Counted from the stretch's first letter, positions 2,942 through 58,938 are shown. The stretch is DNA of 64,000 nt from Lepidodermella squamata (GCA_047495785.1 JBLDXI010000030.1:1178001-1242000); one strand, 5' to 3'. The notes: a model not told the origin generated them from the letters alone. Program-made: numbers and translations.

Positions 2942-4105
2942 TTATTCTAGCATCAACGAGAAGAGTATTGTGTCAATGATGATGACGATAATGCTGGCAA
3001 TTGCAGCGATTGCAACGTCCAAAAACCGACGCATCGGCATGTTAATTGACTTATGGAGGTTAACAACGCGGGTTTTCAGCTGCTCAGAAAAGGCTGGAAT
3101 CAAACAAGTATACGCTGTTATTAGCACCGCCACGATGAACTTAGCCGCGACCATGTACACAAGATAGAGATGATCCGAAGTTTTAGGCATCATGCCAAAA
3201 ATCATCGTTAAATATACAACATAGGACAGCACAACGGTCACGCAAAATGCCGATTGATCTCTGTCAACGGGTTCAGCAATCAAAGAAATGACTTGCAGGA
3301 AGAAAAGCATAGAAGTTGGTACGAAGATGTTGCAGACGTAGTAGCTGCTTTTGCGACGAAATCGGATCGTCATTCTCAGGCGGTTGATATGATAAACGCC
3401 ACTCATTTGGCTAGACATGGAAGTGTTGAACTCGAATGGCTCGACAACCGTCCATATATCTGAATCAACAATGAAGGTATCCCGGGCTGATGAGTCAATG
3501 TTGAATGCGTCTATGTTATACACCACGTCGTGGTAGAATTCTGCGGATTCGAAAACCAACGAACAGGATTGGGTGTCGAAGGGGAATTTCCCGTAGCTAA
3601 AAGCGGTGCATGATACGTCGAAACGGTCGTAGATGTCGAAAAACAGCATATCTCGAAATGGAAAGACCCAAACTTGATCGCTGATTTTCCGTGTGAGAGC
3701 AGGAGATCCATAAGCTGTCATATGGCCGATTCCCGGAACCCAAATTTCCGTCGCAGGAACATAGAAGTAGAGTGAATTCTTTCGTGGTATATTGCAGTCC
3801 GATTCGGATAATAAGTCCGTACATTTCGGAGGTGGGCATGGCAGCCTCCAGTCCAGAATGAGATGCCCTACTAGCGATAGTTTCTGCTCAACATCATCAA
3901 TGCCCACAAAGCGTAAGAGGGACATTCTGACATTCACAACAATCGGCTTGCTGTTGTTTGAGCGGACTGCTTGGTCGGTTGGGAGGCATTGTGATCGCAA
4001 GGCTGGGCAGAATTCAGCGTATTTCGTCTGTAAGTTTTCAGCAACTGACCAAGTTGCGTCGGAGGCATTTATAAGCATAGAAATGAGAAATGCTAGCAGA
4101 ATCAT
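2942..4105 (-). CDS. Intronless Cys-loop ligand-gated ion channel subunit, nAChR-like non-alpha, subtype A
   Basis: Signal peptide, IDDVEQKL, IWVP, CTAFSYGKFPFDTQSC loop, pre-M1 RFRRK, four TM helices, MPKTSD M2-M3 linker. Confidence 0.92.
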   Translation of the reverse strand: MILLAFLISMLINASDATWSVAENLQTKYAEFCPALRSQCLPTDQAVRSNNSKPIVVNVRMSLLRFVGIDDVEQKLSLVGHLILDWRLPCPPPKCTDLLSESDCNIPRKNSLYFYVPATEIWVPGIGHMTAYGSPALTRKISDQVWVFPFRDMLFFDIYDRFDVSCTAFSYGKFPFDTQSCSLVFESAEFYHDVVYNIDAFNIDSSARDTFIVDSDIWTVVEPFEFNTSMSSQMSGVYHINRLRMTIRFRRKSSYYVCNIFVPTSMLFFLQVISLIAEPVDRDQSAFCVTVVLSYVVYLTMIFGMMPKTSDHLYLVYMVAAKFIVAVLITAYTCLIPAFSEQLKTRVVNLHKSINMPMRRFLDVAIAAIASIIVIIIDTILFSLMLE

Positions 4106-6282: not shown

Positions 6283-7458
6283 TCAGGCTAGCATCAGAGA
6301 GAAGAGAACTGTATCAACGATCAGCACAGTTAGACTTGCAATAATAGCAACGGCAATATCCAAGAAACGATGAATTGGCATGCTCAAAGATTTGTGCATC
6401 CTAACTAGACAATTAAGTAACTTCAAAACACTAGATTTAAGCCACTCTGGAATACTATGGCTCAAGCAAGTGTACGCCGTAATTATGACTGCAACGATGA
6501 GCTTAGCTGCGATCATGTACACAAGGTAGACATGGTCAGAAGTTTTTGGCATCATGCCGAAAATCAACGTTAGAAATACCACATAGGAAAGCACAACTGT
6601 CACGCAAAATGCTGATTGGTCCCTGTTTATAGGCTCAGCGATCAAAGAAACGACTTGAAGGATGAAAAGTATGATAGTTGGGACGAAAATGCTGCAGACG
6701 TAGTAACCACTTTTGCGCCGAAGTTTAATGGTAAAGTTCACGCGGGAGTACTCTGTTATGTCTGCGCCTTCGAATGTAGAATTACTGAATAGCTCCACTA
6801 ATGACCATATATCAGTATCAACAATGAAGGTATTACCAGAACTCGTGTCGATTTCAAAATATCCAAGACTGAACACCACGTCTCTGATAGGATCGCCTGA
6901 TTCAAGAACTAGCGAACAGGCCTGCGTATCGAATGGGAATTTGCGATAGCTGAAAGTTGTGCAAGATACATCGAATCGGTCAAAAACATAGTACCTCACA
7001 GCATTCTCCTCGGCAAATGGGTGGATCCAGACGAGGTCAGTGAATTTACGACCGATAACAGGATACTCGTATGCAGTCAAATGATTGATTACAGGAATCC
7101 AAATTTCCAGCACAGAGACCGGGAAGTAGAGATCGGCAGGACTTAGTATGTCGCATTCAGTTTGAGATAGTAAATCTGTGCATTTTGGTATCTCGCATGG
7201 CAGCCCCCACCACACGGACAGATAGGCCACCACAGACAATTTCTGCTCCACATCGTCGATGTCTACAAACCGAAGCAGATCCATGTACATGGTCACTATC
7301 ACCGGGCTGGTGTTGTTGGAATAAACCAATTGATCCATCGGTAGGCTTTTCGACTGGACTGCTTCACAATATTCAACGAATCTTTCTTGCAGCTTGCCAG
7401 AAGTCGTCACAGCAGCTACCAGCTTGACAACCACCAGCAAAATTAGATAGGATCTCAT
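6283..7458 (-). CDS. Intronless Cys-loop channel subunit, subtype B
   Basis: Signal peptide, CTTFSYRKFPFDTQAC, ESGD at loop B, four TM helices; complete ORF. Confidence 0.92.
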   Translation of the reverse strand: MRSYLILLVVVKLVAAVTTSGKLQERFVEYCEAVQSKSLPMDQLVYSNNTSPVIVTMYMDLLRFVDIDDVEQKLSVVAYLSVWWGLPCEIPKCTDLLSQTECDILSPADLYFPVSVLEIWIPVINHLTAYEYPVIGRKFTDLVWIHPFAEENAVRYYVFDRFDVSCTTFSYRKFPFDTQACSLVLESGDPIRDVVFSLGYFEIDTSSGNTFIVDTDIWSLVELFSNSTFEGADITEYSRVNFTIKLRRKSGYYVCSIFVPTIILFILQVVSLIAEPINRDQSAFCVTVVLSYVVFLTLIFGMMPKTSDHVYLVYMIAAKLIVAVIITAYTCLSHSIPEWLKSSVLKLLNCLVRMHKSLSMPIHRFLDIAVAIIASLTVLIVDTVLFSLMLA

Positions 7459-10521: not shown

Positions 10522-13500
10522 ATGCAACTTATCGTGTTATTATTGATTTTTTGCTTAATTACATTCCATTGTGATAAGGTAGATACTTGATCTCGGTTCA
10601 AATAATTAAAATTAGCCTTATCTTGAAGTAGCAAAAATTGATTTACGCGTGTTCTCCATCTCCAACATATGTTACCCTATGTTACCTCTTTTCATCGAGA
10701 ACTGCTGAGCTATAAACTGCAAATGAAACTTTCAGAATTGATATTGATACTTACATTTCAGCTGCGAACTTCGTCGATCGTTACTGCTGGCAGATCGATA
10801 GCGCAAGTCTTAGCTGGAAGCGATTACACGGAAGTCGGGTCGAATTTTAATGTTGACGATACAGACTTGCTGCCAGAGCTTGCATCAGGCAGGATAGGAA
10901 CAGTGATCTATAACGTTTGTCAAACAGTATTGATTGATAAATTATTGCAGTCTCAAAGTTGTTCTAGGAATCGATTTACTTGTCATCGCTTTTTTACAAC
11001 GATTCTGGTTACATCAGAAGACTGCCCGTTCCTAACTATGCTGTGTTCAAAGTTGAATCGATCGAAATTGATAATGAATTTGTGAATATTACTGACAGAA
11101 AGTATCGTTTCTACCTAACAATCGGAATTTGGCAAGAGTTGATCACGACCCAGCGAGGTATTAACATCAGCTCATATCACGGCTGCAGCTTCAGGTACAA
11201 GCGAACCTATTTCCATTCTGTTTCGATATCAGCCGGCAACAATTCAATCGGCTCGATCATTCGATTTCATCGGGATAAAGAATACGACGAGCTTCTAAGT
11301 GATGAAGTCCTCCGAGATCGATATCAACAACTCTTTATTGACAAAGAAATCCAGGTGGCCGGCTACAATGCATCGTAAGGAAGTTGAGCCTTGCAATAGG
11401 TTCTTAACGGCTGTAAATATTCTTACTAGATACGTGTACTTGGCGGTGCGGAATCCACTCTTCGGCTACACTCAAGCCATATCGATATATGTCAATAGCA
11501 CATTTGCTCTAACTGGCAAATCTTATTTCGACATTGAGATTACGGCTAGAGTTACGGAAACCTTTGTGGCCATTCAGACCATCGATGTCGATTCAGATGC
11601 AGCTAAGACTGAGTTCACTGAACTGATGAATCCGGTTTTGCAAGCTAATTTGCTGATGATACTTCAAGTTGTCGACTGGGATGACAGGATTATAACTGGC
11701 TACGTCAGAGTGCAAGGTTGGTATAATTTTTAGGGCCAAGCTATTCGCACATAACTATGTACGCGAAAATTGCTTTTCGTACATAGTTTTGCGCGATTTT
11801 TCAGAGTTATTCAAATGGGTGTGGAAATTCGAGATTTGACGATGATACCATGGAATTTCACAGGGAGATGCAGCAAAGTGAGGCCCATCTAGTGCTCAAA
11901 TTTCGTCAGATTATCTTCCAAAGTATTCACGCTAGGGTCGTGAAAAACAATTCAAATAATGCCATTTTGCGAATCTACCTTAGGGGGTCCAATGGTGATT
12001 TTTTGAGGGGAGATAAGCCTGATGGTCAGCTATCAGCACGCAAAAAATTAGATTGATGGGATGAAAATTGAGCAAGTCGTTTATCTTAGAAAAAAGCATA
12101 TCGAAACTATGTACGAATAGCAATTTTCGCGTACATACTATGTACGAATAGACATTCCGTAATTTTTATACGTTCTTTTCCAAACAAATAAATCTTGCTT
12201 TGAACCTTTGATATACCAGGTCCACGCGAAGACGTAATCAACCGAGCCATTCGATCAGCCTACTATCAAGTCTTCAGCCAAATCGATATAAACTTCGTCG
12301 AATCTAAACCTGACTCTACGGGACTATATGACTCATTCCACGGAGCTTCCGCGTGCGGCCTTGGCCGCGGATCTTCGCGGCGTCAATTCGGTGGCCGCCA
12401 AACTGTGAAACAGGAAATATTTCTATTCCAACCTGTTGCGTGGCTGAGGCCTGACTTGGCCGAGCAACTCATGCTGCTCCGCCCTACAACCTTTAACGAA
12501 CAAAATTTGAACCCCTATGAAATAGTGAACAGAGTTGGAGTTTCATCAACATGGTGTCCTCATTGCTCGCAGCAAGGCATCTACAGTGAAGGGTTCTTCA
12601 GTTTTGCCTCTCGCATGTTATACTTCATTAAACGGGGGAAAATGAGCGCCGATGATTTGTGGTCAGCAAATAGGGACTTAAACGAACATCTGGCGGAAGA
12701 GATATCAAAGGATAACGGCAACAATGGGTACATCTCGATCTACGGCGTAACCGGGCCCGATGAACTCCACCATAATCAGTCTGACCATTTGCTAACCAAT
12801 ATTCTCGGACAACTAGGGGTTCACTTTACCCAGTACTTGGCGTGTATTAATAGAGGTGAGATCGATGAGGTCCTGCTGGAAAAATCGATGCGCCTAAAAT
12901 TTCCTTACGACAATGTGACGAAGATCCACTATCAGTTCGATGGGTTCGATTTGAATGATGCGATTTCGCAGGCCGATGTCCTCTTGGCTCATTTTCCAGT
13001 TGGATACAATTTTTCTGGGAAATTTCTTGAACAGGCTCCTCCAGATCTCTTGAGAAACGATATTGACGTAGGTTGCCATCTGATTCAAGGCAAGATATAA
13101 TCGAATATTTTCAGAATTATCATCGCCTCTTCGGCAGAACATTCAGAGCTGGGGTCAAGCAAGTGGAAATTCCTGGCACCTCTTTGGCTGTCAAAGCTAT
13201 ACTTGAGATGCAACTTGCTACGAAAGTTTCAATGGCAGCTGGTCGGAAAGACTTTGAAGATCTGCTAGAAAATTACCATTCTGAGCCATTTTTCATCTGG
13301 AGGAACGTCACTGATGAGGAAAATGCTGCAATTGGCCACACATATACTGCAGCTGCTTTCCTGAATGTCCTCATGTTCGGATTTGCAGGACTGAGAATAA
13401 GACACAATCGGGTCGATATTCTTCAGCCATCGCTACCAGATGGTATCGAGAACCTAGCGCTGTTGGATATCGAACTTTTGGGCTATAATGTCGACTATCA

Positions 13501-13979
13501 TATAAATCGAACTCATATCACCATTCCGTATCTGAACGCGAATTTTAGAAAAATCACGAGCCTATACAGTCGAATTGGGAACCGGTATATCGATCTCGCA
13601 TCCGATAAGATAGAGCTTGAAATTCCTACGGTTGCCGAGACGTCAGACACGACAGCGGCAATCTACTCGTTCACAGCTAGCGATAGCTCCCTATGTCCGC
13701 TGGATGATAGGAACTACAACAGCCACAATCCTTACTACACTCTAGTAGACATTGCTGATGAAAACGAATCGCCAGAAGGCAAGAATATTGAGGCCTAATT
13801 CCCCTTGTTTGATCAAATTGTCAATTTTTACAGATGATAACTTGGTTGTAATTTTATTGTCAACTTTCAGTGCTTTAGTCGTTGTTATAGTAGCGGTTCT
13901 CCTGATCTTGTACATTCGGTCCCGCAAGAATGCTGCAAAAATATCAAACACGTCTCAAGCCAATGGGGATGGAAACTAA
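10522..13979 (+). CDS. Type I membrane protein with a GH65 (PGGHG/ATHL1-like) ectodomain; intact 5' part of a GH65-TM-tyrosine kinase gene (853 aa as modelled)
   Basis: Exons 10522-10578, 10762-10914, 10968-11374, 11430-11716, 12220-13067, 13115-13778, 13834-13979 join in frame (GT-AG, one GC-AG). Signal peptide MQLIVLLLIFCLITF; GH65 motifs RAIRSAYY, HGASACGL, GVTGPDELH, QFDGF..SQADVLL..FP, EPFFIW, FLNVLMFGFAGLRI; TM LVVILLSTFSALVVVIVAVLLILYI then RSRK. Confidence 0.8.
11733..12159. mobile_element. Intronic MITE with 9-bp TSD (Mutator-like)
   Basis: ~55-bp inverted repeats (ctattcgcacataactatgtacgcgaaaattgc / gcaattttcgcgtacatactatgtacgaatag); taattttta duplicated at 11724-11732 and 12160-12168. 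Confidence 0.75.
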
Positions 13980-14380
13980 ACAAACTAGGCTTGAAGTTCG
14001 CCGCCTCCAACATGATATGATTCTGATGCATAAAATGTTTTAGAGATTAGTTGACATTTGTTTCTCTGAGATATTTGAAATCTACCGGAATCCTCGCCTC
14101 TCTGTGAAGATGAGCGCGTGTAGAAATTACCTAAGTTATAAATTCTGCTTCTCTAGGCGTATTCGTGCTGCGTGGAACTGTCTGTCTTCTGTTGTCGTAA
14201 ATAATTATCATCAAGTTTTCTGCAACTATATTAAACATAATTCTGCTCTAATTGATAAACATGTAACATGCGGTGAGGCGCCTCGAAATCACATACTGCT
14301 GATCATTGAAATTTACCATTTGCTAACTGTTCATAACAATTTGCAATAAAATTGAGTAATGAGTAAAGAGAGTAATTAGT
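13979..14380 (+). mobile_element. 5'-truncated CR1/L2-type LINE fragment inserted in the juxtamembrane exon
   Basis: Reads RLEVRRLQHDMILMHKMF and FCFSRRIRAAWNCLSSVVV (CR1 ORF2 C-terminal pattern); AATAAA at 14345-14350; (gagtaa)-type tandem tail; aacta at 13974-13978 and 14381-14385. Confidence 0.8.
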
Positions 14381-15426
14381 AACTACGTTGTGCCTTTTGC
14401 CGATTTTACCAAACTAATCGAAGGAATCGAAGGCGCTCAAGATCTCGTCATTCTCATCGAACGAATCAACGTTTACAATGACTGGCTTGAGATCAAAGGG
14501 ATCCTTGGAGCAGGACATTTTGGCACTGTCCAACACGCCCTACTTCGAATGCCTGATATGGACGAGCAAGAAGTAGCCGTGAAAAGCATCCGCCCTGACC
14601 TGAAGGCAGACGTTGGACTAATCAAAGAAGCCTATGTTATGAAACATTTCAACCACCCTAATGTCTTACCCCTCATTGGAATCGCGATCCTAAACGAGCA
14701 GCCGAATATTATCGTCCCATTCATGCCTAATGGGACGTTGAAAGAGTTTTCGAAACCAAGACTGCTCGACGAGGTGAGTTTCGGCGACAGACTTCGTTTC
14801 TCCACCCAGATATGCGCCGGGATGGTCTATTTACATGACAAGAATTGCATGCATCGAGACCTGGCTTGTTGAAATGTTTTGTTGGACCAAGATTTCACGG
14901 CAAAGATATCTGATTTCGGAATGTCCCGAGTTCTCGAGGATGATGATGACTACTACCGAACAGCGAATGAAAGCGACTATGCCGTCCCAGTTCGTTGGCA
15001 TCCACCTGAATCGCTGATTAGACACGTTTTTACGTGCTAAACAGTGATGTTTGGTCGTTCGGAGTAATCATGTGGGGAATATTCACAAGTAATTATCCTG
15101 TTTTCAGTTTTGATCCTGGTTTTAAAGAGAATTTCTCCCGCAGATTGTGAACACGAACCGTACGAGGAACTTCAAGCTATGGAAGTCATTGTTCACATCT
15201 CACATCAGCCATGGTTATCGTTTATCTAAACCTGCTGCCTGCCCTGATAAATTGTAAGTTACTTTGCATTCTTTAAGGGACAACTTTATTTCGAGATGGT
15301 TTTTTTAGATATGACGATATCATTTCAAAATGCTGGCAGCAAAGCTACGACGAAAGACCCTCGTTTGAGGAGCTTAAAGAAATCCTAGATGAAATGTACA
15401 GTATCGAATTTATTCAAGTATTGTGA
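14381..15426 (+). pseudogene. Disrupted receptor tyrosine kinase domain (MET/RON-like), 3' part of the GH65 gene
   Basis: LGAGHFGTV, VAVKS, HPNVLPLIG, HRDLAC*N, KISDFGMSR, PVRWHPPES, SDVWSFGV, CWQQSYDERPSF; introns 15089-15143 and 15254-15308; nonsense at 14870-14872, frameshift near 15035, 7-bp duplication (tcacatc x2) near 15192-15205. Confidence 0.9.
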
Positions 15427-15543
15427 ACTGCGTGATTTAGTCTTCGAATCAATTGCCCATTGTCAAGTCAGCACTTCGAGAAGCTTAAAGCATTCAATGA
15501 ACTAGCTAAGGGTATTTCCCAAAATAAAGGATACTGACTGTTG

Positions 15544-16100
15544 CAGTGCTCTCTCGATAATGGCACTGGGTCGGGAGCCAGACCCGGTTTTAAAACAAGG
15601 GAAAATTCACAAGCCCTATTGATTTCTTTTTCATTTACTTCTCTTTACTGCAAAGTTGTTTAGTGATCAGTAATATTGATTCTTTATTTTGCCGTACAAT
15701 TCTCATCTTCTCAGGCGTGGTTTGTTTACCAGTCGACTGGCCTAGCAAGATCAGAGCAAGTTAAAAAATCGAGCAGAATCTACCGCCCGGGATGTTGTCA
15801 TTTTCGAAGTCAAAATCAAAATTAAAAAACGTTATGAAAAAATCGGGAAAATTGCCAGGGCCAGGGCATTGAGCAAGTATATCTTAAAGTAGCGGCAGCC
15901 AGTTTCATGGTAGATCAAGCCTTCAACTATCGAAATTCGGCCAATAACTTGGTCTAATGAAATCGGTCTGATGATGAATATGAGCGAATAATAATAAATT
16001 TATGATATATCAACCTATATATTATAACATTGAAGGAGATCTGAAAACAAGGACCTGATTCTTAGTGATTTCGATACAGCTGGGAAATGAATTAGAAAGA
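15544..16100 (+). mobile_element. Partial, older copy of the 16483-18324 element
   Basis: Same left end (cagtgctctctcgataa..cactgggtcgggagccagacccgg); internal blocks match 17240-17540. Confidence 0.7.
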
Positions 16101-16482
16101 ATCGAGAGAAGCCATCAATATCGTGGCCTGACACTACGGCGCCGACATAAGTGCGGGGACATCAGGGCGCCAGACACGAGGGCGTAGGTTAAAAGAGCGC
16201 TGGGCAGAAGCACGGCCGGACAAAAGAGCGCCTGAATTAACATGAAAAATGTGATTTAGGAATGGGAACACTATTTGACCCAAGAAAATGGTGGCTACGA
16301 GCATTGCATACTTTTTTATTTGCTAAATATTTTGCATATTTTTTTATTGAGCAAGTATTTCGTTCATTTATGAGATTTCCTAGCACAAGTTTGAGCCGGG
16401 TCGCTGTGGCCAAATCAAATGCGGAGAATCCAGATGCCAATGCATTTTAAATCCTTCTTTCAATAATGCTTAAAACGTGGTA

Positions 16483-18324
16483 CAGTGCTCCCTCGATAAA
16501 AGCACTGGGTCGGGAGCCAGACCCGGTCTTTAAACAAGGGAAAGCTATAACGAGGGCTGTAATTGCATGCAGACGCTAAAAATAGACCGTTTCTACGTCT
16601 TAAGACAGTTGCCATGCCAACGCGCAGAAAGAGACGGACACGGATTACTTGTCATTACAAATTTCGCTCGCTGAAGACGCTATGAATCATGAGTTCGTCG
16701 CGAAGTTTTTTCTTAGTTGCCAGGGCGGCTTTGATTTGACTGGTTAGCCTTGTTTTTTTTACTCTGATTTCAAGTCCTGCCTGGGGTTAACAAACTCGAA
16801 TGAAAACAAAACCTGGAATCTCATTATTTCAATTTACTTCAAAAATGCCCAGCTCGTCCGATTTCGCAAAAAAAATCATTTGAAATAACAGCTTAAAACA
16901 TCAATCACCTTGGTCAAGATTGACCGGAATACTTCTGAATAAATCACCAGCAAATTTAGCCTAACATTTTCAAGAAAATGCAGTGTTCAATTCAGAACTC
17001 ATGCTTTGCCTAAAATTCGTGGAATTATTGAAATAATTAGAAATAATTAATATGAAATTTGAAACAATTAAGATAAAATATGTATTTTCGATAATTTTTT
17101 CGCGGTTAACCTGACTTTTTCTTTTTAAATTCCTCGAATCAATGGCATTGAGCAATCACGGACCAATTTCAAGGCATAAGACGTGTGGTTCCGTCAAGAG
17201 GGTACGATTCGATAGGTGTTTTGATTGAATGGAATAAATTTGTATCTTCTCAGGTGTGATCTGATTTTCATTCGACTGGCCTATTAAGATCAGAGTAAGG
17301 TAAAAAATCGGGCAGAAGCTCCCGCCGCCCCTGCTCGGGATGTTGCGATTTTCAAAGTCAAAATCGAATGATTAACAGTTGTGAAAAAAACCCGGAAAAT
17401 TGCAATTCCAATGACTCAGGACAACTCGAACGATGACATCGGTTTATTATAAGAATAAATCTATGTATCTAAATTCAATTAAATCTGAAAACAAGGACTT
17501 GATTCTTCGCTTGATTACGCAACACAGCTGGGAAATAATTTTGAAAAAACTGGAAAAAAATTCATCACTTTAGTGTGGAAGATTCAATAATTTTCGACCA
17601 GAAAAACCTGGATTTTACTAGTCGTTTCCCACGGCTCACGGTTTATTCCAGCGGGGTTCTTCCAAAAATGGAGAAATAACTACCGAATCGTTAACAAATA
17701 CCACGAAGTTTCATTTTTCCTGACAAAAGTCACGATTTCTAATCCTAATTCGATCATGTTGGTAAATTTAAAAAGCTTTTGTGGCCGGGAAAACTGCTAA
17801 ATCATGACAAATCAGGGCAATTCAGTGGGTGTTCAATTAATCAGCTATTGATCTCAGAAAAATCTTCAAATCAAGAAGATTGAAGATAGACGGGCATTTT
17901 TATAGTTGTTTAAACGAATTACTAATTGTTTTCTGATGAACTGGCTGATGAATTTCTAATGGAGCTTCAACTCAAAAAGCGGGACGACTCGCAGCACGAC
18001 TTGAGTGGCAGCTAATCCACACATTCTGTTGCGTAATCACAGTCATTTCAAAGCCACAAGAACAGCTTAATGCACTGATGATCTTTCAACTCGTTTGAAC
18101 TAAACTTGAAATAACTGGATCTCTCAAAACCACGACAACGCGCCGCTAGGTTTCTAGGAACGCTTTATTATTTTGAATTTTCACGCTTAATTCATTTAAT
18201 CTATCAAATAATTATTTTTTGTTTAATTAAAAATTTACAACTAATTTATTTGGCAGGGTCCAAAATTACGGTCTACAAACGAGGGAGTTCTTTTAAGGAG
18301 GGTGCCACTAACGAGGGAGCACTG
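16483..18324. mobile_element. Non-autonomous Tc1/mariner-type DNA transposon, TA TSD
   Basis: ta|cagtgctccctcgata...taacgagggagcactg|ta; no intact transposase ORF. Confidence 0.75.
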
Positions 18325-18598: not shown

Positions 18599-19783
18599 TC
18601 AGGACAGCATTAGGGAAAAGAGAACTGTATCAACAATAAGCACAACCAGGCATGAAACAATAGCAACGGTTATATCCAAAAAACGGAGTATTGGCATGGT
18701 CGAAGATTTGTGTATCCCAACCAGACAGTTTTGCAACATGAAAACACAAGATCTAACTCCCTCAGGGATACTATGGCTCACGCAAGTGTAGGCCGTTATT
18801 ATCACAGCAACGATCAATTTAGCTGCGATCATGTACACAAGGTAGACATGGTCTGAAGTCTTTGGCATCATGCCAAAAATCAACGTGAGAAACACCACAT
18901 AGGAAAGAACAACTGTCACGCAAAACGATGATTGGTCCCTGTTTACAGGCTCAGCGATCAACGAAACGACTTGAAGAATGAAAAGTATGATGGTTGGGAC
19001 GAAAATGTTACAGACGTAGTAGCCACTTTTGCGTCGAAGTTGAATCGTAAAGTTCACGCGGGAGTACTCGGTTATGTCTGCGCCCTCGAATGTAGAATTA
19101 CTGAACAGCTCGACCAGTGACCATATGTCAGAATCGCCGATGAAAGTGTTATCAGCGGTTTCGTCGATGCCGAAGTGACCAAGGCTGAAGACAACGTCTC
19201 TGAGAGGATCGCCTGATTCGAATACAAGCGAGCAAGCTTGCGTATCGAAGGGGAATTTGCGATAGCTGAATGCTGTGCAAGAAACATCAAATCGGTCGAA
19301 TATATAGTACCTCACAGCATTCGACAAGGAAAGCGGATAGACCCAGACCAGGTCAGTAAATTTGTGACCAATAACAGGAGATCCGTAAGCTGTCAAATGA
19401 TAGATTATTGGAGTCCAAATTTCTAACGATGTTACCGGGTAGTTGAGCTTGGTAGGGCTGAGAGTATTGCATTCTGTTTCGGATAGTAAATCTGTACATT
19501 TTGGTGTCTCACATGGCAGGTCCCACTGCGCTGACAGATAAGCTACGAGAGACAGTTTTTGCTCCACGTCGTCGATGTCCACAAACCGGAACAGATTCAT
19601 GGAGATACTTACGATTACCGGACTGGTGTTGTTTGAAAATACCAATTGATCCATCGGTAGGCTTTTCGACAGAATTGCATCACAATATTCAGCGAATTTT
19701 GCCTGTAACTTGACAGAAGTTGTCATGGCAGCTGCCGTTGAAGCCAGCTCAACCACCACCAGCAAAATTAGATGGGATCTCAT
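18599..19783 (-). CDS. Intronless Cys-loop channel subunit, subtype B
   Basis: Close paralogue of 6283-7458 (shared SNSTFEGADITEYSRVNFTI); complete ORF. Confidence 0.92.
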   Translation of the reverse strand: MRSHLILLVVVELASTAAAMTTSVKLQAKFAEYCDAILSKSLPMDQLVFSNNTSPVIVSISMNLFRFVDIDDVEQKLSLVAYLSAQWDLPCETPKCTDLLSETECNTLSPTKLNYPVTSLEIWTPIIYHLTAYGSPVIGHKFTDLVWVYPLSLSNAVRYYIFDRFDVSCTAFSYRKFPFDTQACSLVFESGDPLRDVVFSLGHFGIDETADNTFIGDSDIWSLVELFSNSTFEGADITEYSRVNFTIQLRRKSGYYVCNIFVPTIILFILQVVSLIAEPVNRDQSSFCVTVVLSYVVFLTLIFGMMPKTSDHVYLVYMIAAKLIVAVIITAYTCVSHSIPEGVRSCVFMLQNCLVGIHKSSTMPILRFLDITVAIVSCLVVLIVDTVLFSLMLS

Positions 19784-20647: not shown

Positions 20648-21817
20648 TCATTCCAACATCAACGAGAACAGTATTGCGTCAATCAGGATGACGACGAGGC
20701 TGCCACTTGCGGCGATTGCGACGTCCAAATATCGAAGCATCGAAATTTTCAAAGACTTATTCAGCTGAATTACGCGCGTTTTCAGCTGCTCAGAATAAGC
20801 TGGAATCAAGCAGGTATATGCTGTTATTAGCACCGCCACTATGAACTTGGTCGCGACCATGTAGACAAGGTAGACGTGATCTGACGTTTTTGGCATCATG
20901 CCAAAAATCATCGTCAAATATACAACATAGGACAGAACAACAGTCACGCAAAATGCCGATTGGTCCCTGTTCACAGGCTCAGCAATCAAAGAAATAACTT
21001 GGAGAAAGAAAAGCATAGAGGTTGGGACAAAGATGTTGCAGACGTAGTAGCCACTTTTGCGGCGAAATCGGATCGTCATTGTCAAATAGCTGACGTGATA
21101 GGCGCCATCTAACTGATTAGAAATAGAGGTATTGAACTTAAGTGGCTCGACAACTGTCCAAATATCAGAATCAACGATGAAGGTATCACGGGCTGATGAG
21201 TCTATGTTGAATGATTCAATCTGATAAGCCACGTCTTTGTAGTACTCGAAGGACTCGAATACTATGGAACATGACTGAGTGTCGAATGGGAATTTTCGGT
21301 AGCTGAATGTCGTGCAGGATATATCAAATACTTCGTAGACGTCGAATATTACTAAATTCGAATGAAATGGGTAAACCCAAACTTGGTCACTGATTCTCCT
21401 GGTAAGAACAGGCGATTCGTAAGCTGTCATATGGGCAATTCCTGGTAACCAAATTTCCGTCGCAGGAACAAAGAAATACAGGTTATCCTTTCGCGGTATG
21501 TTGCATTCCGCATCCGATAGTAGATCCGTACATTTCGGAGTTGGGCATGGCAGCCTCCAGAGCATATATAGATGTGCGAGAAGCGATAGTTTTTGCTCTA
21601 CATCATTGATGCCTACAAATCGGATGAGAGACATGGTGAGATTCACGGTAACTGGACTGCTGTTATTCGAATATATTGCTTGGTCGGTTTGTAGGCACTT
21701 TGACCGCAAGGCTGGGCAGAACTCAGCATATTTCGCCTCTAAATTTTCTGCGTAAGATAAAGATGCGGCAAGCGGTTCAATTTGCATGAATATCAAGGCG
21801 AATATTAGCCGAGTCAT
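20648..21817 (-). CDS. Intronless Cys-loop channel subunit, subtype A
   Basis: EFCPALRSKCL N-terminus, CTTFSYRKFPFDTQSC, four TM helices; complete ORF. Confidence 0.92.
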   Translation of the reverse strand: MTRLIFALIFMQIEPLAASLSYAENLEAKYAEFCPALRSKCLQTDQAIYSNNSSPVTVNLTMSLIRFVGINDVEQKLSLLAHLYMLWRLPCPTPKCTDLLSDAECNIPRKDNLYFFVPATEIWLPGIAHMTAYESPVLTRRISDQVWVYPFHSNLVIFDVYEVFDISCTTFSYRKFPFDTQSCSIVFESFEYYKDVAYQIESFNIDSSARDTFIVDSDIWTVVEPLKFNTSISNQLDGAYHVSYLTMTIRFRRKSGYYVCNIFVPTSMLFFLQVISLIAEPVNRDQSAFCVTVVLSYVVYLTMIFGMMPKTSDHVYLVYMVATKFIVAVLITAYTCLIPAYSEQLKTRVIQLNKSLKISMLRYLDVAIAASGSLVVILIDAILFSLMLE

Positions 21818-22367: not shown

Positions 22368-25087
22368 TCATGATAACATCAGTGAGAAAAGAACTGCGTC
22401 GATAATCAATACAATCAGACCGGCTGCTATAGCAACGGCCAGGTCCAAAAAACGCTGCATTGGTAAGGCCATACATTTGTGTAACTTGAGGACGCGGGAT
22501 TTTAGTGACTCGGGGATATTAAAGCAAGTATATCCCGTAATAAGGACAGCAACGATGAATTTAGCCGCGATCATATACACAAGGTAGACATGATCTGAAG
22601 TTTTTGGCATCATGCCAAAAATCAAGGTGAGAAATACTATGTAAGATAGAACGACAGTCACACAAAACGCTGATTGATCCCTGTTCACAGGTTCAGCGAT
22701 CAAAGAAATGACTTGAAGGATGAAAAGTGTGATAGTAGGCACAAAGATGTTGCAAACGTAGTAGCCACTTTTGCGGCGAAATTGAATTGTCAAGATCACA
22801 CTGGAATAGTCAGTCCTGTCGTTGTTCGGTATTGTTGCATTGCCGCTATACCCGACGACTGACCATATGTCAGAATCAACGATGAAGGTGTTTTCATCGG
22901 AGCTATCAATTCCAAATGATCCTAAACGGAACACCACGTCTCTTGAAAGATCGCCGGATTCGAATACCAGTGAGCACGTTTGCGTATCGAACGGGAATTT
23001 GCTGTAGCTGAAAGCGGTGCAGGATACATCGAATCGATCGTAAGCATAGTAGCTCACTTCTTTCGACTTGATAAATGGATAAATCCAGGCCAGGTCGTTG
23101 AACTTGCGGCCGATAACGGGAAACTCGTAAGCAGTCAAATGATGAATTTTAGGTGTCCATATTTCTAACGTTTGAACCGGGTAGTTGAGCTCAAAAGGCC
23201 TAAGTATTTTACATTCTGTTTCTGATAGTAAATCTGTGCATTTCGGTTTTTCGCAGTGGTCCGACTTGAACTGATCGGGAGGGGGGTGTGAAAACATCTG
23301 ATTAAAAAATTGCGCTCGCGAACGCTGCGCGTTCGCTCGCATCCATTACACGTTTCTATTGCCTTTATAAGCTTTCAGGCACTTTTCATACGGGGCCCTT
23401 CCCGCCACGAGACAACACAAAACATACTTATGCGTACGTTTTCAAAATTAAATGTGCATACATTTTCGTGTTTCGCATCGCCATACGAAGACAACATTTT
23501 ACATTGAAGAGTTTCATAATATGCGAGCGAAGCGAGCTCAAAATATAGTTTTAATGCTGAATTATCATAAGGGGATAGTGTAAAAATTGATTCAAATCAA
23601 ATAAAGCTTTTATAACTTCGAGCTTGAAAATGAGAGCTATTTTATGTGATTGAAACGGACTAATCTTCCCGGGGTTTATCGAACCAAAAATATTCATAAT
23701 TACTTCGGAAAATCGCATAAGCAAATGCACTGTTTACTCCATTGTCAACAATCAATGGATTTCTAGAAATAATCGGGGCAGCCAGAAAACAATGCGAGCG
23801 TAGCGAGCCGAAAATTTCAAAATTTATGAGATATTTCATTTGTTGGTTATTTTGGTGGATGGCGACCTTTATAAATTTGCATCAGCACCTGCGATTTCTG
23901 TTAGCCTTTTAAAACCCATAAATACATTTGTTTTAGACGAACTGAATGTCCCTTTCATGCAAGCGGCCCGTGTGCCCACGCGTTAAAACGGCCCTGCTGC
24001 CACTGGAATGTAACCGTGCAATTTATATTGATAACTCAAAACCAGTGTGTGCTACCTCCAATATGACTTCGGATTCGGATTCGGCGTGAAATTCTGGATA
24101 GAAATATATGTGACACGACCTGTCCAACGTAAAAATTGACCACGTGACAGTAAAGCAATAAATTTATTACACCCCCTAATTATCTCCTGATCTATGATGA
24201 CTGCGAAAATTCTGAAAAAAGAAACGGATTCAGCGTACGAAATTTACCCCTCCGGGGTTTCTAAGGGGGTTTTCGTCAAAAAAGAACACATTTTTCAACT
24301 TTTTTTTAAAAAAATTAATTTTTGTGAAAATATGACGGTCGATTTCAATCACATGAAAATTTAGTTTTTTTTTCATTTTGTGTTTTTATGATCGCGATAC
24401 ATGTTTCTAGGGTAACTTTTTACGAGGAATTCAATGGCGCAGTCCATTTTTCGATATTGATTTTTCCTGTATCGATTTTTGACCATCGATTTATTGATTA
24501 TTGGCTGATCGATCGATTTTAGACTTTTTACCCCCTTCCAGTGTTAGTAGATTTATGCTGGAAGGGCACGACTTTGTTTAACTACACGTTACAGGTAAAT
24601 TTCATGTTTTTATACCAATCTATATATCTTCCAGTCATATTGGCTTCAACACTTTCTTGAACCATTTTTCCGCCTCCAGGGGGGTAAGCTCACCCCCCTC
24701 AACCGTCAGCCGCCTGTGCTAGGGGTGGGCATTTTCCCCCCTTCCCCCCCGGAGTCGGAACACTGGTTTTTCGCATGGCAGCCCCCACCGCATGGACAAA
24801 TGCGCCAATAATGATAGTTTTTGCTCCACATCGTCGATTCCCATAAAACGGAGGAGATCCATTCGGATTGTCACGATAACCGGACTGATATAAATTATAC
24901 TATTAATACTAATATTAATAATACTAATACTGGTATTGGAATAAACCAATTGATCCATCGGTAGGCTTTTTGACGTAACTGCCCGACACCATTCAGTGAA
25001 TTTTGCCTGCAGCTTCTCAGAAGTTTGCACCGTAACTTTCGTCGAAGCGAGCCTACCCACCACCAGCAAAACTAGAAGCGATTTCAT
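22368..25087 (-). pseudogene. Cys-loop subunit, subtype B, split by a hAT element
   Basis: 25087-24766 gives signal peptide to WGLPCEK; 23245-22368 continues PKCTDLLSE to the stop; removing 23254-24765 plus one TSD restores the frame. Confidence 0.88.
23254..24765. mobile_element. Non-autonomous hAT-superfamily element
   Basis: TIR cagtggtccgact / agtcggaacactg; 8-bp TSD gtttttcg at 23246-23253 and 24766-24773; internal gcgagcgaagcgagc motifs. Confidence 0.9.
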
Positions 25088-25901: not shown

Positions 25902-27074
25902 TCATTCTAGCATCAACGAGAAGAGTATTGTGTCAATGACGATGACGATAATGCTAGCCATTGCAGCGATAGCGACATCCAAAAACCGACGCATTGACAT
26001 GATTATGGACTTTTGCAGATTAACAACGCGCGTTTTAAGCTGCTCAGAATAGCCGGGAATCAAGCAGGTATACGCTGTTATTAGCACCGCCACGATGAAT
26101 TTAGCTGCGACCATGTAGACAAGATAGAGATGATCTGAGGTTTTTGGCATCATGCCAAAAATCATCGTCAAATATACAACATAGGACAGCACAACAGTCA
26201 CGCAAAATGCCGATTGATCTCTGTTCACGGGTTCAACAATTAACGAAATGACCTGAAGGAAGAAAAGCATAGATGTTGGGACGAAGATGTTGCACACGTA
26301 GTAGCCACTTTTGCGCCGAAATCGAATTGTCATTCTCAGGCGGTTGATAGGATAAGCACCACTCATTTGGCTAGACATTGATGTATTGAACTCGAGTGGC
26401 TCAACAACTGACCATATATCAGTGTCAACGATGAAGGTGTCCCTGGCTGACGAGTCAATATTGAATGCGTTCATTTGATAAACAACATCGTAGTAAAATT
26501 CGGATGATTCGAATACCAGCGAGCATGACTGAGAATCGAAAGGAAATTTTCGGTAACTAAATGTGGTGCATGATACGTCGAAGCGGTCGTAGATATCGAA
26601 AAACAGTGTGGTATTTGGTTTAAAAGGGAAGACCCAAACTTGATCACTGATTTTCCGTGTGAAAACTGGCGTTTCGTAAGCTGTCATATGGCCGATTCCT
26701 GGTACCCAAATTTCCGACGCAGGAACGTAGAAGTACAGGTAATTCTTTCGTGGTAATTCGCAGTCCGATTCGGATAATAAGTCCGTACATTTCGGAATCG
26801 GGCATGGCAGCCTCCAGGCCATAGTAAGATGACCGACAAGCGATAGTTTCTGTTCAACATCATCGATGCCCACAAAGCGTAGGAGGGACATTGTGACATC
26901 CACGACAACTGGCTGGGTGTTTTTTGAGCGGACTGCTTGATCGCTTGGGAGGCACTTCGATCGCAAGGCCGGGCAGAACTTGGCATACTCTGCCTCAAGG
27001 TTCTCAGCAACTGACCAAGCTGCGTCGGAAGCATTTATCAGCTTAAACGAGAGAAGAAATGCAAGCAGAATCAT
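25902..27074 (-). CDS. Intronless Cys-loop channel subunit, subtype A
   Basis: Closest paralogue of 2942-4105 (MILLAFL.., NTSMSSQMSG); complete ORF. Confidence 0.92.
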   Translation of the reverse strand: MILLAFLLSFKLINASDAAWSVAENLEAEYAKFCPALRSKCLPSDQAVRSKNTQPVVVDVTMSLLRFVGIDDVEQKLSLVGHLTMAWRLPCPIPKCTDLLSESDCELPRKNYLYFYVPASEIWVPGIGHMTAYETPVFTRKISDQVWVFPFKPNTTLFFDIYDRFDVSCTTFSYRKFPFDSQSCSLVFESSEFYYDVVYQMNAFNIDSSARDTFIVDTDIWSVVEPLEFNTSMSSQMSGAYPINRLRMTIRFRRKSGYYVCNIFVPTSMLFFLQVISLIVEPVNRDQSAFCVTVVLSYVVYLTMIFGMMPKTSDHLYLVYMVAAKFIVAVLITAYTCLIPGYSEQLKTRVVNLQKSIIMSMRRFLDVAIAAMASIIVIVIDTILFSLMLE

Positions 27075-28080
27075 ACTGCTGAGCTTTCAACCTAATTCCT
27101 ACCTGTGAGCTCGAAACGGTTTGGCGAGTAATTTCAGGTTGAACTAAAAATTGGACAACCACGGCAGTTACATTTCCTGTTAAACATTGGTTTATTATCA
27201 ATAAAAGTGTATTATGCTTTCTCTTAACCAATTATAAGGAAACGCTTACCTGAACAAATAGCGCGAGATCAATTTTTTCGCGAAATGCAGCATATCGATT
27301 GACCAAAAAAGAAATAGGCATTTCATTTATATTAGGATACTGAAAGTTTGAACGCCGAAAATGGCTAAATAAGCTTGGCTGCCATTCAAAATATGAAGCT
27401 CGACGCAAAGAAATGAATAAGAGTGACAAATTGCTGATTTTAGCCAGTAGCAGAATGAGTTTTTATCAGTTATTTGGAATACAGGGAACAGTTTTCAGCT
27501 CCTTTAAATAATTGAGTTAGCAGACACCTTCTATAATTGCCAGCCGTTGATCGCACGCCAATAGGCAATAGCTCTGAAAAAACAGTCGAGAGTCCTCTTT
27601 CGAGCGAATGTAGCCTCGAATCGATGAAATGACAGGCGTATTTTAAAAAGAACCTGATGGCTTAATACTCGAAATTATAGTTTTACGATGATCTGGGCTG
27701 GTATCATAGCTTGCAACTAAATTTAGAAAAAAATAAAAAATTATTCGATAACGATCCGTAACATTAGCCAACTTGAGCTACTGAGAAGTGTAACAAAATC
27801 AGTGTCTCTAACGACTGGCATCGCATGCACTGATTAGCTTGTATCCACTGTTAGAGTTAATTTTAGCATGCTGCAGCACATTCCACAGGGCGGAGCAACA
27901 TCTCGGGAAGGTTACACTGCTTTAGTCATACTAAAATCGGTTATGATACGTGACAAAAGCAATTTTCTGTATGCAAAAAATGTAAGCTCGAAATTAGCTT
28001 CGTCACGCCTACATTGCATAAACGTTGACTTGTTAGTCCCAATAGTTAGTAGTTTCTATTCCTCGGCATCACAAACTTCA

Positions 28081-30405
28081 ATGGAAAAGGCAATATTCGT
28101 GATTTTGTTGATTCTCAGCACTTCCGTTGCATCGGAAGTTACGATTCAAGTTCCGGTATTCTTGCCATTCACTGGTCTCCTGCCAAACCAATACAGAACA
28201 TGCCGAGCTGTAACTGAGCTGGTTTTCAACAAGTTCAATGAAGACCCAACTCTCCTACCTGGCTATCGAGTTGAACCCGAGTTCATGGACGACAACAACG
28301 GCCCGTTGTTGGTTCAACGATTGCTCGAATTCGATTCTCGATCCAAACTTGACAACAGTTCGAAAATTCGAGCACCAATAATCTTAGGTCCGATCAATAA
28401 CTGCCATCTGACAGCTAGTTTCGCTCATATGCTTGGGTATATTCAAATCGCCCAATGCCCCGGCGATATCTTGATGAACAAGATTTTGTACCCAAATCTG
28501 TTCCTAATTCGTCCGGTTGGCTATCATTCGTGGAATATTAGGATTCGTTTCATGCTAGATATCGGAAACTGGCGACGTGTTGGCCTAATCGCTAGCTCCC
28601 ACATTCAAGATACATCCAACGCTCGTTTGTTCAACGATCTCGCCCTTAGAGTTGGGATGCAAGTCTATATTGATATAGTAACGGATTTCACAGATGAAGC
28701 AACTCTAGCCCTTCAACAATCCGATGTTAGGATCATCGTTTTCGCTGTTACGGCAGTCAATGCCCTGAGCTATAGGATTCTATGCCAATGCTTCAAATTC
28801 GGCATAACTGGACCTAGGTATGTTTTCATTCTTCCTGGGAGTGTTTTCGCAGATCCGAAAACTCTGCCGAATGAAACTTACCCTGGTTGTACGAGAGAAA
28901 TTATCGCAACTCAATACAAATTCGCATTCATGGCCTCAAGCCAGCTCAGCTCGGAAGATACGGTAGGGAAGAGCCAATTGGGTTACTCTCTAACAGAATT
29001 CGATAGAATGTTGGACAACTACACCGGCTCGCTGCGTCATCCTGATTATTCAAGCCGATTTTTCTGTCATGATGCAGCTCTTCAAGGTCTTCTCATTCTC
29101 GACGAAGGTCAGAAGGTTCTGAGTAAGCAAGGCCTGAGCCTTTCAAACATCTCGACTCATTCGATCGAAATATCAAACGTGATGAATGAAACAGGTATGA
29201 AGCTGAGATTTGCCGGTCTGAAGAGTGAGGGCCTTACTACGTACAACGATCGGGGAGAGGTAACAGGAAGCAAGTGGCCGATATCTCAATGGACCCCAGC
29301 TGGTGGCCTGAAGATTGTCTATCACATAACGAAGGCTCCAAATGACAGCAAAACCGACGCCAGCTCATACAGATCTTTACCTGTTTCAAAAATTGAATGG
29401 TACACAGCTTTCGGGAAGCCAATCAAGGACAGAGCGACATACGTAAAGATCAACGAAGATGTACCTATTGAGGCTAGAATTTTAATCTGGATTTTAGCTT
29501 TGATTTCTTTCACGGCTAAAGTTTTAGCTTTAATTAAGGTGTTGGTGAAAATCGGACTGAAACTGCCTGTTTTAATCCAGATTATTAGCTTCTGTTTATT
29601 GGACCCTAGTGCTGTTCTATTCATGATCGAAGTTGAGCTGGATAATATGGTTAGCCTTTTCAAGGCCCGTGTTGCCCTCCTTGCATTGGGGATTTCGCTT
29701 TCAAACGCAGCGATGTCTCTTTTAGCCTTGTTCACGACATCCGCAATTAGATCACGTACAAAACCGTCGAGGCTTAATTTACTTGCGAAAACAGCGTCTA
29801 ATCCGGTGAGTGTAACGCCAACGGAGAAATTCCATACGCGAAAATATATATTGGCGCTGATGATTTTCGGCTGCGTGGTAGTTACTTACGTGACTGTCTG
29901 GACCACGATCGAGCCAGCGATGTGTTACCGCCAGTTGAAATTTGATACGGCCTATTACGATGAGATTGAAGACATGATAACCGAGGTTCTTGGCGTCGCG
30001 TGTCAGTCACGTAACGAAATCGCGTGGATCTTTGCGCTGCTCAGCGTCAACGCCGCAATTTTATTAGCCGGCGCGACATCGGCTCGCCAACACGTTAGGA
30101 CTCTACGACTAACGGAGAAGTATCATCAGTTCAATATGCTGCTCTATGCTATGGTGAACGGACTGATTTTGATGCTTGCAACTTGCCTAGTTGTACTCAT
30201 CGTTCCGCAGTACCCTATTCCTCAGCGTATTGTGATGGCGATATCAGCTTTGTTTTATTCAGCTATTTCAAGTGTCATGTGTCTGGGTCCAGTTTTGCGG
30301 AAACCAGTGCAGATATTTCCAGTGCCGGAACTAAAGCATCCCCGGCCGTCAGTTGAACTCAAACTCAATGGGTTGACGTTAGGACCAACAATTTTACCAC
30401 GCTAG
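28081..30405 (+). CDS. Intronless class C GPCR, GABA-B-like architecture (VFT + 7TM, no cysteine-rich domain)
   Basis: Signal peptide from MEKAIFVILL (preferred over ATG 27868); LLPGY, IILGP, YPNLF, WRRVGLI, CQCFKFGITGPRYVFI, HDA; seven hydrophobic segments; C-x-S in ECL2. Confidence 0.88.
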   Translation: MEKAIFVILLILSTSVASEVTIQVPVFLPFTGLLPNQYRTCRAVTELVFNKFNEDPTLLPGYRVEPEFMDDNNGPLLVQRLLEFDSRSKLDNSSKIRAPIILGPINNCHLTASFAHMLGYIQIAQCPGDILMNKILYPNLFLIRPVGYHSWNIRIRFMLDIGNWRRVGLIASSHIQDTSNARLFNDLALRVGMQVYIDIVTDFTDEATLALQQSDVRIIVFAVTAVNALSYRILCQCFKFGITGPRYVFILPGSVFADPKTLPNETYPGCTREIIATQYKFAFMASSQLSSEDTVGKSQLGYSLTEFDRMLDNYTGSLRHPDYSSRFFCHDAALQGLLILDEGQKVLSKQGLSLSNISTHSIEISNVMNETGMKLRFAGLKSEGLTTYNDRGEVTGSKWPISQWTPAGGLKIVYHITKAPNDSKTDASSYRSLPVSKIEWYTAFGKPIKDRATYVKINEDVPIEARILIWILALISFTAKVLALIKVLVKIGLKLPVLIQIISFCLLDPSAVLFMIEVELDNMVSLFKARVALLALGISLSNAAMSLLALFTTSAIRSRTKPSRLNLLAKTASNPVSVTPTEKFHTRKYILALMIFGCVVVTYVTVWTTIEPAMCYRQLKFDTAYYDEIEDMITEVLGVACQSRNEIAWIFALLSVNAAILLAGATSARQHVRTLRLTEKYHQFNMLLYAMVNGLILMLATCLVVLIVPQYPIPQRIVMAISALFYSAISSVMCLGPVLRKPVQIFPVPELKHPRPSVELKLNGLTLGPTILPR

Positions 30406-32287: not shown

Positions 32288-32498
32288 ATTGCTGAACTTC
32301 ATTTCAAATCCTACATTTAAGAACCATAAACGGTTTCCGATGTATTTCAGGTGGAAGCATGAAAAATTACATTTGGATGACTTCAGTGGATACATTTCCT
32401 ATAAAAAGTTCAGATCAATAAGGGAAACAATTACTTAAACAAATAGGGTGAGGTCGATATTTTACCGCGGCAGGACGATTAAACAAACAGCTAGCTTT

Positions 32499-58715: not shown

Positions 58716-58737
58716 CAGTTATCGAGGGAGCACTGTA
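58716..58737. mobile_element. Solo right terminus of the 16483-18324 element family
   Basis: ttatcgagggagcactg|ta is the reverse complement of the left TIR. Confidence 0.6.
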
Positions 58738-58938
58738 TCAAGCAAACTTGAGGATGTGCCTTGAGAGCTCAAAACATCTATTACGTCAAATTCAGCTTTC
58801 GAAACGTAAGAGTTAGAGTTAATTTAGTAAGCGTTAAATTTAATAAGCTATATTAAATGTGTCTGTTAGATCACGAAGCGTTTCTTCTTGCTCATTTGCG
58901 TAAATTCCAAGTCGCACACCGAAACATAAAACAGCAGA

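Follow-up and report, generated by a model that had tools for sequence, protein, structure and literature searches.

A predicted GH65 pseudo-enzyme forms the ectodomain of a truncated receptor-like gene in Lepidodermella squamata

Introduction

What becomes of a glycosidase fold once the residues that cleave the sugar are gone, and why would a genome keep it? The question is raised by a six-exon gene on the plus strand, at 10741-13979 of a 64,000-nucleotide (nt) stretch of Lepidodermella squamata DNA (GCA_047495785.1, JBLDXI010000030.1:1178001-1242000; hereafter the window), whose ectodomain aligns with PGGHG, an enzyme from family 65 of the glycoside hydrolases (GH65). The initial annotation, made by eye, had described this ectodomain as a conserved fold with part of its catalytic set missing and had proposed a pseudo-enzyme, possibly a lectin. 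The pseudo-enzyme reading is well supported by the alignments reported here: the general base, three of the four ligands of subsite -1 and the tyrosine that holds the base are replaced, the replacements are family-wide and the coding sequence bears the marks of purifying selection. The lectin reading is weaker than was first implied. On balance, the ectodomain is probably the descendant of a PGGHG-type GH65 alpha-glucosidase that would be unable to hydrolyse by the mechanism of its family and has been retained as a ligand-binding, possibly dimerising, receptor module.

Results

Relationship to GH65 enzymes

Spliced together, the six exons yield 2523 coding nt (841 codons) free of lesions, with reading frames, GT/GC-AG borders and phases in agreement, as part of a short-intron eukaryotic genome. 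The predicted product consists of a short hydrophobic leader, an ectodomain of ~790 residues, a single membrane span (from 13834) and a 24-residue tail. Sequence searches were run exon by exon. For exon 4 (12222-13067), the best sequence match among solved structures is human PGGHG (chains 9sd4-9sd8; E = 7e-12, HMMER), in an alignment that pairs GRQTVKQE with GHVFWDQD, GPDE with SPDE and SQAD with KQAD; the chain index in this alignment is the usual numbering plus one, so that the Lys of the first motif falls on Asp301 and the retained Glu on Glu430. Against Pfam PF03632 this copy scores 18.6 bits, under the 27-bit cut-off, and two kinase-less paralogues score 53 and 48 bits. Exon 5 as a single sequence had no match among the solved structures (phmmer) and did not reach PGGHG, and its family profile was therefore aligned instead. 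The sole matches of that profile among solved structures were phosphorylases, and weak ones; aligned to the C-terminal halves of PGGHG-like proteins (hhalign, 98.6%), it sets P-F-x-x-W-R-N opposite p-f-x-v-W-T/S-E, a register that is the same in MAFFT and that places Asn at the position of the base Glu574. Judged by these alignments, the ectodomain is a member of the GH65 superfamily by descent across its central (alpha/alpha)6 domain.

Since a 47-nt intron splits the catalytic domain of this gene, a kinase-less paralogue that carries the domain in one open frame (L024:421-2166) was chosen for structural modelling. The AlphaFold2 model, built from a 72-row alignment, has a predicted local distance difference test score of 82.8 and a predicted template modelling (TM) score of 0.89. 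In Foldseek, the five human PGGHG entries 9sd4-9sd8 rank on top (E = 6.5e-24, TM 0.68), followed by GH65 phosphorylases together with FjGH65A and then by GH95. The model supports, for this paralogue, a PGGHG-like (alpha/alpha)6 barrel with a C-terminal beta domain, in keeping with the conserved fold that had been proposed.

Active-site residues

The catalytic pair was assigned from the PDB titles of the human PGGHG entries, which name E430Q/E574Q mutants, in agreement with the FjGH65A paper. In FjGH65A the acid is Glu472 and the base Glu616, the E472Q and E616Q variants are each <0.1% active, and exchange of the base Glu for Gln alone costs >99.9% of activity (PMC8626586). The base and the -1 ligands Trp343, Asp344, Lys538 and Gln539 are conserved in all GH65 hydrolases (PMC8626586; PMC11442529). 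We compared the equivalent positions in five phosphorylases, 11 hydrolases and the 12 other family members together with the copy in the window (Table 1); the 13 family members compared comprise 10 receptor-kinase paralogues, two kinase-less paralogues and one metagenome protein.

Table 1. Residues at catalytic and sugar-binding sites in active GH65 enzymes, in the other family members and in the copy in the window.
Site	Active GH65	Other family members	This copy
Base-holding Tyr	Tyr	Phe	Phe
-1 Trp	Trp	Val / Pro / His	Val
-1 Asp (Asp301)	Asp	Glu (9) / Asp (3)	Lys
+1 Glu	Glu	Glu	Glu
General acid	Glu	Glu (Lys in one)	Glu
-1 Lys	Lys	Ser	Ser
-1 Gln	Gln	Gln (Glu in one)	Gln
Thr-Glu (base)	Thr/Ser-Glu in hydrolases	Arg-Asn	Arg-Asn
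Phe after base	Phe (His in phosphorylases)	His	His

The general-base Glu (FjE616/HsE574), present in all 11 hydrolases, is Asn in 13/13 family members (here at 13304-13306). The change from VWTEN to IWRNV that had been spotted by eye is confirmed, with I-W-R-N-V at 13295-13309 and its Asn on Glu574 in both hhalign and MAFFT. The tyrosine that hydrogen-bonds the base (FjY337) is Phe in 12 of the 13 family members, as against Tyr in 10/11 hydrolases. The four -1 ligands FjW343, D344, K538 and Q539 correspond in this copy to Val, Lys, Ser and Gln, which leaves just the Gln unchanged. The -1 Lys has become Ser throughout the family (13/13; here the Ser of SQAD at 12966), and the earlier reading of SQAD for KQAD is correct, as is that of GRQTVKQE for GHVFWDQD (GGRQTVKQE, 12390-12416), in which Val-Lys replaces Trp-Asp at 12405-12410 (V from 12405, K from 12408). 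The associated claim that the conserved Trp-Asp pair is lost holds in part. The Trp is indeed gone family-wide, but the Asp301 equivalent is still Glu or Asp in the 12 others, and Lys at this position is private to this copy; as the alignment has it, this Lys is derived on the copy's own branch. Beyond what was first described, the losses include the Tyr-to-Phe exchange, an Arg in place of the His of the GH motif in this copy's clade, and the dead kinase of this copy.

The general-acid Glu (FjE472/HsE430) is kept in 12/13 family members, here within the GPDE that lies opposite SPDE, and its retention had been read correctly. Arg-Asn, Ser and the new His are constant across all 13 members, and R63, N64 and H75 in exon 5 and S249, D180 and G58 in exon 4 are likewise invariant in the family. 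As aligned, the ectodomain lacks the canonical inverting-hydrolase machinery and most of the -1 site that holds the glucose, and the residues found in their place are fixed.

Two alternative readings of the site were rejected. The first was a displaced base, either the Asp at +3 after the Asn or an Asp/Glu just after W-R-N; the +3 Asp equals the conserved Asp of TENAD in active PGGHG-like proteins and therefore cannot count as a displaced base. The alignment check for acidic residues at the catalytic positions thus returns Asn at the base, a downstream Asp that is no substitute, and the kept acid Glu. The second was a phosphorylase-like site, with the T-S-L of the family read as Ser-Ser; it was dropped because the column register puts Ser-Ser opposite Pro-Gly/Ala, as in hydrolases. 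From the GH65 phosphorylase phosphate site (Lys/Arg330, Ser631, Ser632 and His675; CsKP numbering), only the invariant His is present here (hhalign to phosphorylases at 95.9%), with Pro-Gly at Ser-Ser and Cys at the Lys position.

These residues also bear on whether the domain could still be a glycosidase or transglycosidase with a non-canonical base, the invariant Asn and the nearby Asp activating water in the manner of GH95, and with a changed sugar specificity. We regard this as improbable. In favour of it, the domain still has Gln at -1, Glu at +1 and its general-acid Glu, and both the Asn and the Asp three residues on are invariant or nearly so; active PGGHG-like enzymes, however, conserve this Asp just as well, and so it is no new partner for the Asn. 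GH95, which has a related (alpha/alpha)6 fold and no carboxylate base (PMC10063614), does appear among the structural matches; yet in the present family the base-positioning Tyr and three of the four -1 ligands were lost together, and one member, the metagenome protein P0001, is without the acid as well. The sole phosphorylase-like feature is one His, the two-Ser site reading Pro-Gly/Ala as in hydrolases.

Family, relatives and order of events

The 121-Mb genome contains at least 13 relatives of this gene. Nine form a minus-strand tandem array on the same contig, 16-100 kb beyond the window; two receptor-type relatives lie on other contigs, and two kinase-less ones, whose open frame ends with a hydrophobic tail, on a third contig. 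One more remote relative lies on a fourth contig. The searches of this genome turned up no canonical GH65. A much more divergent GH65-like gene, L040 (G000:C59:169628-173191), scores 41.9 bits against PF03632, and its G-H-x-F-W-D and P-D-E motifs are unrecognisable.

Outside this genome, a word search and a profile search yielded P0001 as the sole close relative, a kinase-less protein of 796 residues from a eukaryotic metagenome scaffold in which the acid motif reads GTDK. Beyond P0001, 1.84 billion representatives searched exhaustively with the profile yielded PGGHG-like proteins from E = 4e-35 downward, either canonical or independently degenerate, and none of the seven longest hits carries a kinase. 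No fusion of GH65 to a kinase was seen outside this genome in the protein-library profile search, NCBI animal proteins included, and a scan of metagenome contigs for wider relatives found none. The best matches of the family's kinase are generic tyrosine kinases, 36-41% identical, and point to no named family.

A maximum-likelihood tree built from the exon 4 region groups the family as one clade (100/100), on a long stem of 1.41, among the eukaryotic hydrolases; the receptor type likewise forms one clade (100/98), sister to the kinase-less forms. Since the Asn, Ser and Phe are shared across the family, the simplest order of events places the loss of catalysis on the stem, ahead of the divergence between receptor and kinase-less forms; it also appears to predate the fusion to the tyrosine kinase.

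Two of the independently degenerate proteins were followed up. XP_077992271.1, from the hemichordate Glandiceps talaboti, reads F-x-G-H-V-L-P-D, NAGD and W-T-N in the alignment, and XP_053692205.1, from the mosquito Sabethes cyaneus, reads GQAD and W-N-K. Both are members of the superfamily to which the family described here belongs, and their losses are of a like kind, the base Glu included. Unlike its members, however, they are of soluble type, 765-772 residues long and kinase-less; their substitutions differ and arose independently, and they lie outside the clade, with profile E-values of only 1e-24. A literature search found no study of either protein. They are likely to be independent pseudo-enzymes, and dead PGGHG-like proteins are probably commoner than realised.

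A dead kinase below an intact ectodomain frame

The nearest paralogue carries its membrane span and kinase in an intact open frame and so has the layout of a receptor tyrosine kinase. In the window, by contrast, the span is followed by a TAA, an inserted repeat and a broken kinase, and with its kinase dead, this copy would encode an anchored ectodomain that has no kinase. Lesions were called base by base against four paralogues. In HRDLACRN the Arg codon has become TGA (14870); two frameshifts stem from a 2-nt insertion near 15027 and a 7-nt duplication at 15193-15199, and 3 nt are deleted near 14612. The inserted repeat has at least 40 copies of 70-91% identity across many contigs, and its size and copy pattern make it look more like a short non-autonomous element than a LINE.

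The ectodomain presents a different picture: no frame-breaking lesion occurs in the 2523 nt of ectodomain and anchor, as against three in the ~870 nt of the kinase. At the kinase rate, ~8.7 would be expected upstream (Poisson P ~2e-4), and the confinement of the lesions to the kinase speaks for an ectodomain that is still needed. The ratio of non-synonymous to synonymous rates (dN/dS) among the five closest paralogues amounts to 0.13-0.30 for the exons of the ectodomain and 0.03-0.09 for the kinase. The branch of this copy shows 19 non-synonymous and 33 synonymous changes in the ectodomain; in the kinase the corresponding counts are 14:22, versus 4:22 in the sister copy. Where the other receptor-type paralogues agree throughout a column, this copy never departs from them, compared with 0-6 private changes of this sort per exon alignment in the others.

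That the whole gene is instead a young pseudogene, its ectodomain functionless in this copy and lesions either not yet gained or overwritten by gene conversion from a neighbour, we consider unlikely, although several observations fit it. There is no doubt that the kinase is dead; the inserted repeat terminates the frame, and in the pocket the Glu-to-Lys change is a private charge reversal. Synonymous divergence from the nearest paralogue (L031; window 12222-13795) is uneven, 0.14 and 0.26 in ectodomain exons and 0.45 in the kinase, which suggests gene-conversion tracts within the family; conversion could thus have refreshed the ectodomain in place of selection. Two public runs match this stretch as contigs of unclear kind that lack the splice joints of this copy, the joints present being paralogue or chimera signals. 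Against a functionless ectodomain stand the lesion-free 2523 nt, the absence of private changes at family-invariant columns, which even intact paralogues do not always show, and the 19:33 ratio on the branch. A pseudogene would in any case concern this copy alone and leave the family-wide pseudo-enzyme conclusion untouched.

Gene layout and neighbouring genes

The features of the locus are collected in Table 2. Two motifs that are specific to the family and invariant in it, W-C-x-x-C in the barrel (12552-12566) and the C-P-L-x-D-R-N-Y-N-S-H-N-P-Y-Y of exon 5, close to where the ectodomain ends, do not occur in active GH65 enzymes. Intron 3 (11717-12219) is ~450 nt longer than in the paralogues owing to an extra piece with inverted ends (11733-12168), which has very high contig depth in a public run (11654-12130) and is probably a second multi-copy element that leaves the coding frame untouched. 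The apparent GC donor of intron 5 (GCAAGA) is present here and in the two nearest paralogues, and a more distant paralogue has GTAAAA in its place. Acceptors of the nematode-like TTTTCAG type occur; no nematode SL1 leader was found in the genome, and Rfam gave no match within the window.

Table 2. Coordinates of the gene and of the sequences that follow it (window positions).
Feature	Position	Strand	Description and evidence
Exon 1	10741..10914	+	Start codon, short hydrophobic leader, beginning of GH65-like N-terminal domain; GT donor 10915; paralogue conservation
Exon 2	10968..11374	+	N-terminal domain; AG acceptor 10966-67, GTAAG donor 11375; phases fit; tblastn matches to all paralogues
Exon 3	11430..11716	+	End of N-terminal domain and linker; tblastn and paralogue alignment
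Exon 4	12220..13067	+	First two thirds of (alpha/alpha)6 domain; PGGHG structure alignment, E = 7e-12
Exon 4 motif F-G-G-R-Q-T-V-K	12387-12410	+	
Exon 4 motif P-Y-E		+	+1 subsite Glu kept
Exon 4 motif GPDE	12753-12764	+	
Exon 4 motif SQAD	12966-12977	+	
Intron 4	13068..13114	+	47-nt GT-AG; splits catalytic domain; common to all receptor-type paralogues
Exon 5	13115..13778	+	Remaining barrel and C-terminal beta domain; W-R-N 13298-13306; invariant G-H 13334-13339
Exon 5 motif C-P-L-x-D-R-N-Y-N-S-H-N-P-Y-Y	13694-13738	+	Family-specific
Intron 5	13779..13833	+	55-nt GC-AG; precedes membrane-span exon
Exon 6	13834..13979	+	Membrane span and 24-residue tail; TAA at 13977
Dispersed repeat insertion	13977..14381	+	~405 nt; not in paralogues; supplies TAA (DNA alignment with four paralogues)
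Decaying tyrosine-kinase remnant	14382..15426	+	Pfam PF07714 matches both sides of in-frame stop

Downstream of the gene, 15506-15619 and 16451-16576 both yield, on translation, one and the same short peptide-like string (..ALGREPDPV.KQGK..) and are probably copies of another small repeat. Elsewhere in the window, seven intron-poor genes of ~390 codons form an array on the minus strand (2942-4105, 6283-7458, 18599-19783, 20648-21817, 22368-23342, 25902-27074 and 31118-32395); with an FPFD-x-Q-x-C Cys-loop signature and four membrane spans, their products look like ligand-gated ion-channel-like receptors. Several long open frames (27868-30405, 43889-46249 and 56697-61188) have predicted products that resemble class-C receptors of the GABA-B (gamma-aminobutyric acid type B) or metabotropic type, which combine a periplasmic-binding-like ectodomain with seven membrane spans.

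Discussion

The reading we favour, a GH65 descendant retained for binding in place of catalysis, has to be set against five observations that count against it. The fold model is that of a paralogue ~35-40% identical to this copy, and the equivalence of the base residue rests on profile and sequence alignment. GH95, of related fold, hydrolyses without a carboxylate base by means of a water activated by Asn/Asn/Asp (PMC10063614), and a Glu-to-Asn exchange is therefore on its own no proof of inactivity. The remaining two concern this copy, namely the uneven synonymous divergence and the public contigs that lack its splice joints.

If the pocket still binds, its ligand need not be the old substrate. 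All active GH65 enzymes hold the -1 glucose with a Trp, an Asp and a Lys, and it is these that are gone here; recognition of kojibiose or Glc-Gal-Hyl therefore cannot be assumed, binding of a glucose-type ligand is doubtful and the putative ligand could be a non-sugar. For a putative carbohydrate-binding role, the conservation seen among the remodelled residues of the pocket is indirect evidence. In the mechanism we propose, the remodelled pocket would bind a ligand without turnover, either a glycan unlike alpha-glucosides or something else. In the kinase-bearing paralogues, binding would be coupled to activation of the tyrosine kinase, for which the oligomerisation typical of GH65 could supply the dimer. 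The copy in the window, if expressed, would be an anchored ectodomain of 841 residues that could plausibly serve its paralogues as a decoy or co-receptor, and its private Glu-to-Lys change may alter the choice of ligand.

The fold might also be kept as a pure scaffold, binding a protein ligand on another surface or serving dimerisation only while the old pocket lies idle. Klotho co-receptors and the carbonic-anhydrase-like domain of receptor phosphatases work in this way. GH65 enzymes are moreover oligomeric, FjGH65A being a hexamer of trimers (PMC8626586). The replaced pocket residues are nonetheless among the most conserved positions of the family, which is not expected of an idle pocket, and a pure scaffold seems to us rather unlikely.

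A broader proposal, which we advance tentatively and think doubtful as a whole, is that GH65 ectodomains have given rise to a new class of animal receptors. Catalysis would have been lost first, a tyrosine kinase joined later and the genes multiplied in tandem, with the remodelled pocket sensing a glycan or matrix-derived ligand; the present copy would be a retained, truncated decoy or co-receptor with an altered pocket charge. The literature searched held no case of a GH65 or PGGHG protein as a dead enzyme turned receptor and no paper that pairs GH65 with receptor kinases, and a GH65 review names catalytic members only (PMC11442529). The natural series of kinase-less, kinase-fused and secondarily truncated forms could show how an enzyme pocket becomes a signalling sensor. 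If the ligand were a collagen-type glycan, the family would link matrix glycosylation to kinase signalling. More generally, proteins of other animals that have been named "PGGHG-like" automatically may not be enzymes.

Comparison with known systems

The closest counterpart is PGGHG itself (ATHL1, protein-glucosylgalactosylhydroxylysine glucosidase), a GH65 hydrolase that trims sugars on collagen and is both the best sequence match of exon 4 among solved structures and the best fold match of the paralogue model; in the tree, the family nests among the eukaryotic PGGHG-like proteins. Common to PGGHG and the family are the hydrolase-type Pro-Ala/Gly where phosphorylases carry Ser-Ser, the Glu that serves as general acid, Gln at -1, Glu at +1 and the TENAD Asp. 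Unlike PGGHG, the family lacks an 11-residue segment ahead of the PWES motif and has gained CxxC and the C-terminal NYNSHNPYY; this copy is membrane-anchored, and its paralogues are also fused to a tyrosine kinase. The residues that set them apart are Glu574 to Asn at the base, Asp301 to Lys (Glu/Asp in paralogues), Trp to Val, Lys to Ser and Tyr to Phe. The GH95 alpha-1,2-fucosidases, which are weaker structural matches, have an (alpha/alpha)6 architecture of related kind and need no carboxylate base for activity (PMC10063614). In contrast to the present family, GH95 shows no sequence kinship to the W-R-N motif, has its Asn pair elsewhere and possesses a complete sugar-binding -1 site.

Outside the superfamily, the likenesses are in design. 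Dead enzymes have been reused as receptors repeatedly, as in Klotho, the chitinase-like lectins and the neuroligins. CHRK1, the chitinase-related receptor-like kinase of tobacco, joins a dead glycosidase domain through one span to a protein kinase, its catalytic Glu lost and its fold kept as in the family described here; it differs in pairing a plant Ser/Thr kinase with GH18, the fold also of the chitinase-like lectins, whereas a tyrosine kinase is paired with GH65 in an animal-type genome here. For the truncated copy in the window, the nearer likeness is to alpha- and beta-Klotho, GH1-derived pseudo-glycosidases with a triosephosphate isomerase barrel that bind protein hormones as co-receptors of fibroblast growth factor receptors. 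Like this copy, Klotho is a single-pass protein with a glycosidase-fold ectodomain that misses part of its catalytic pair and has no kinase of its own, and its ectodomain captures ligands in tyrosine-kinase signalling; unlike the paralogues, it is never covalently fused to the kinase it serves.

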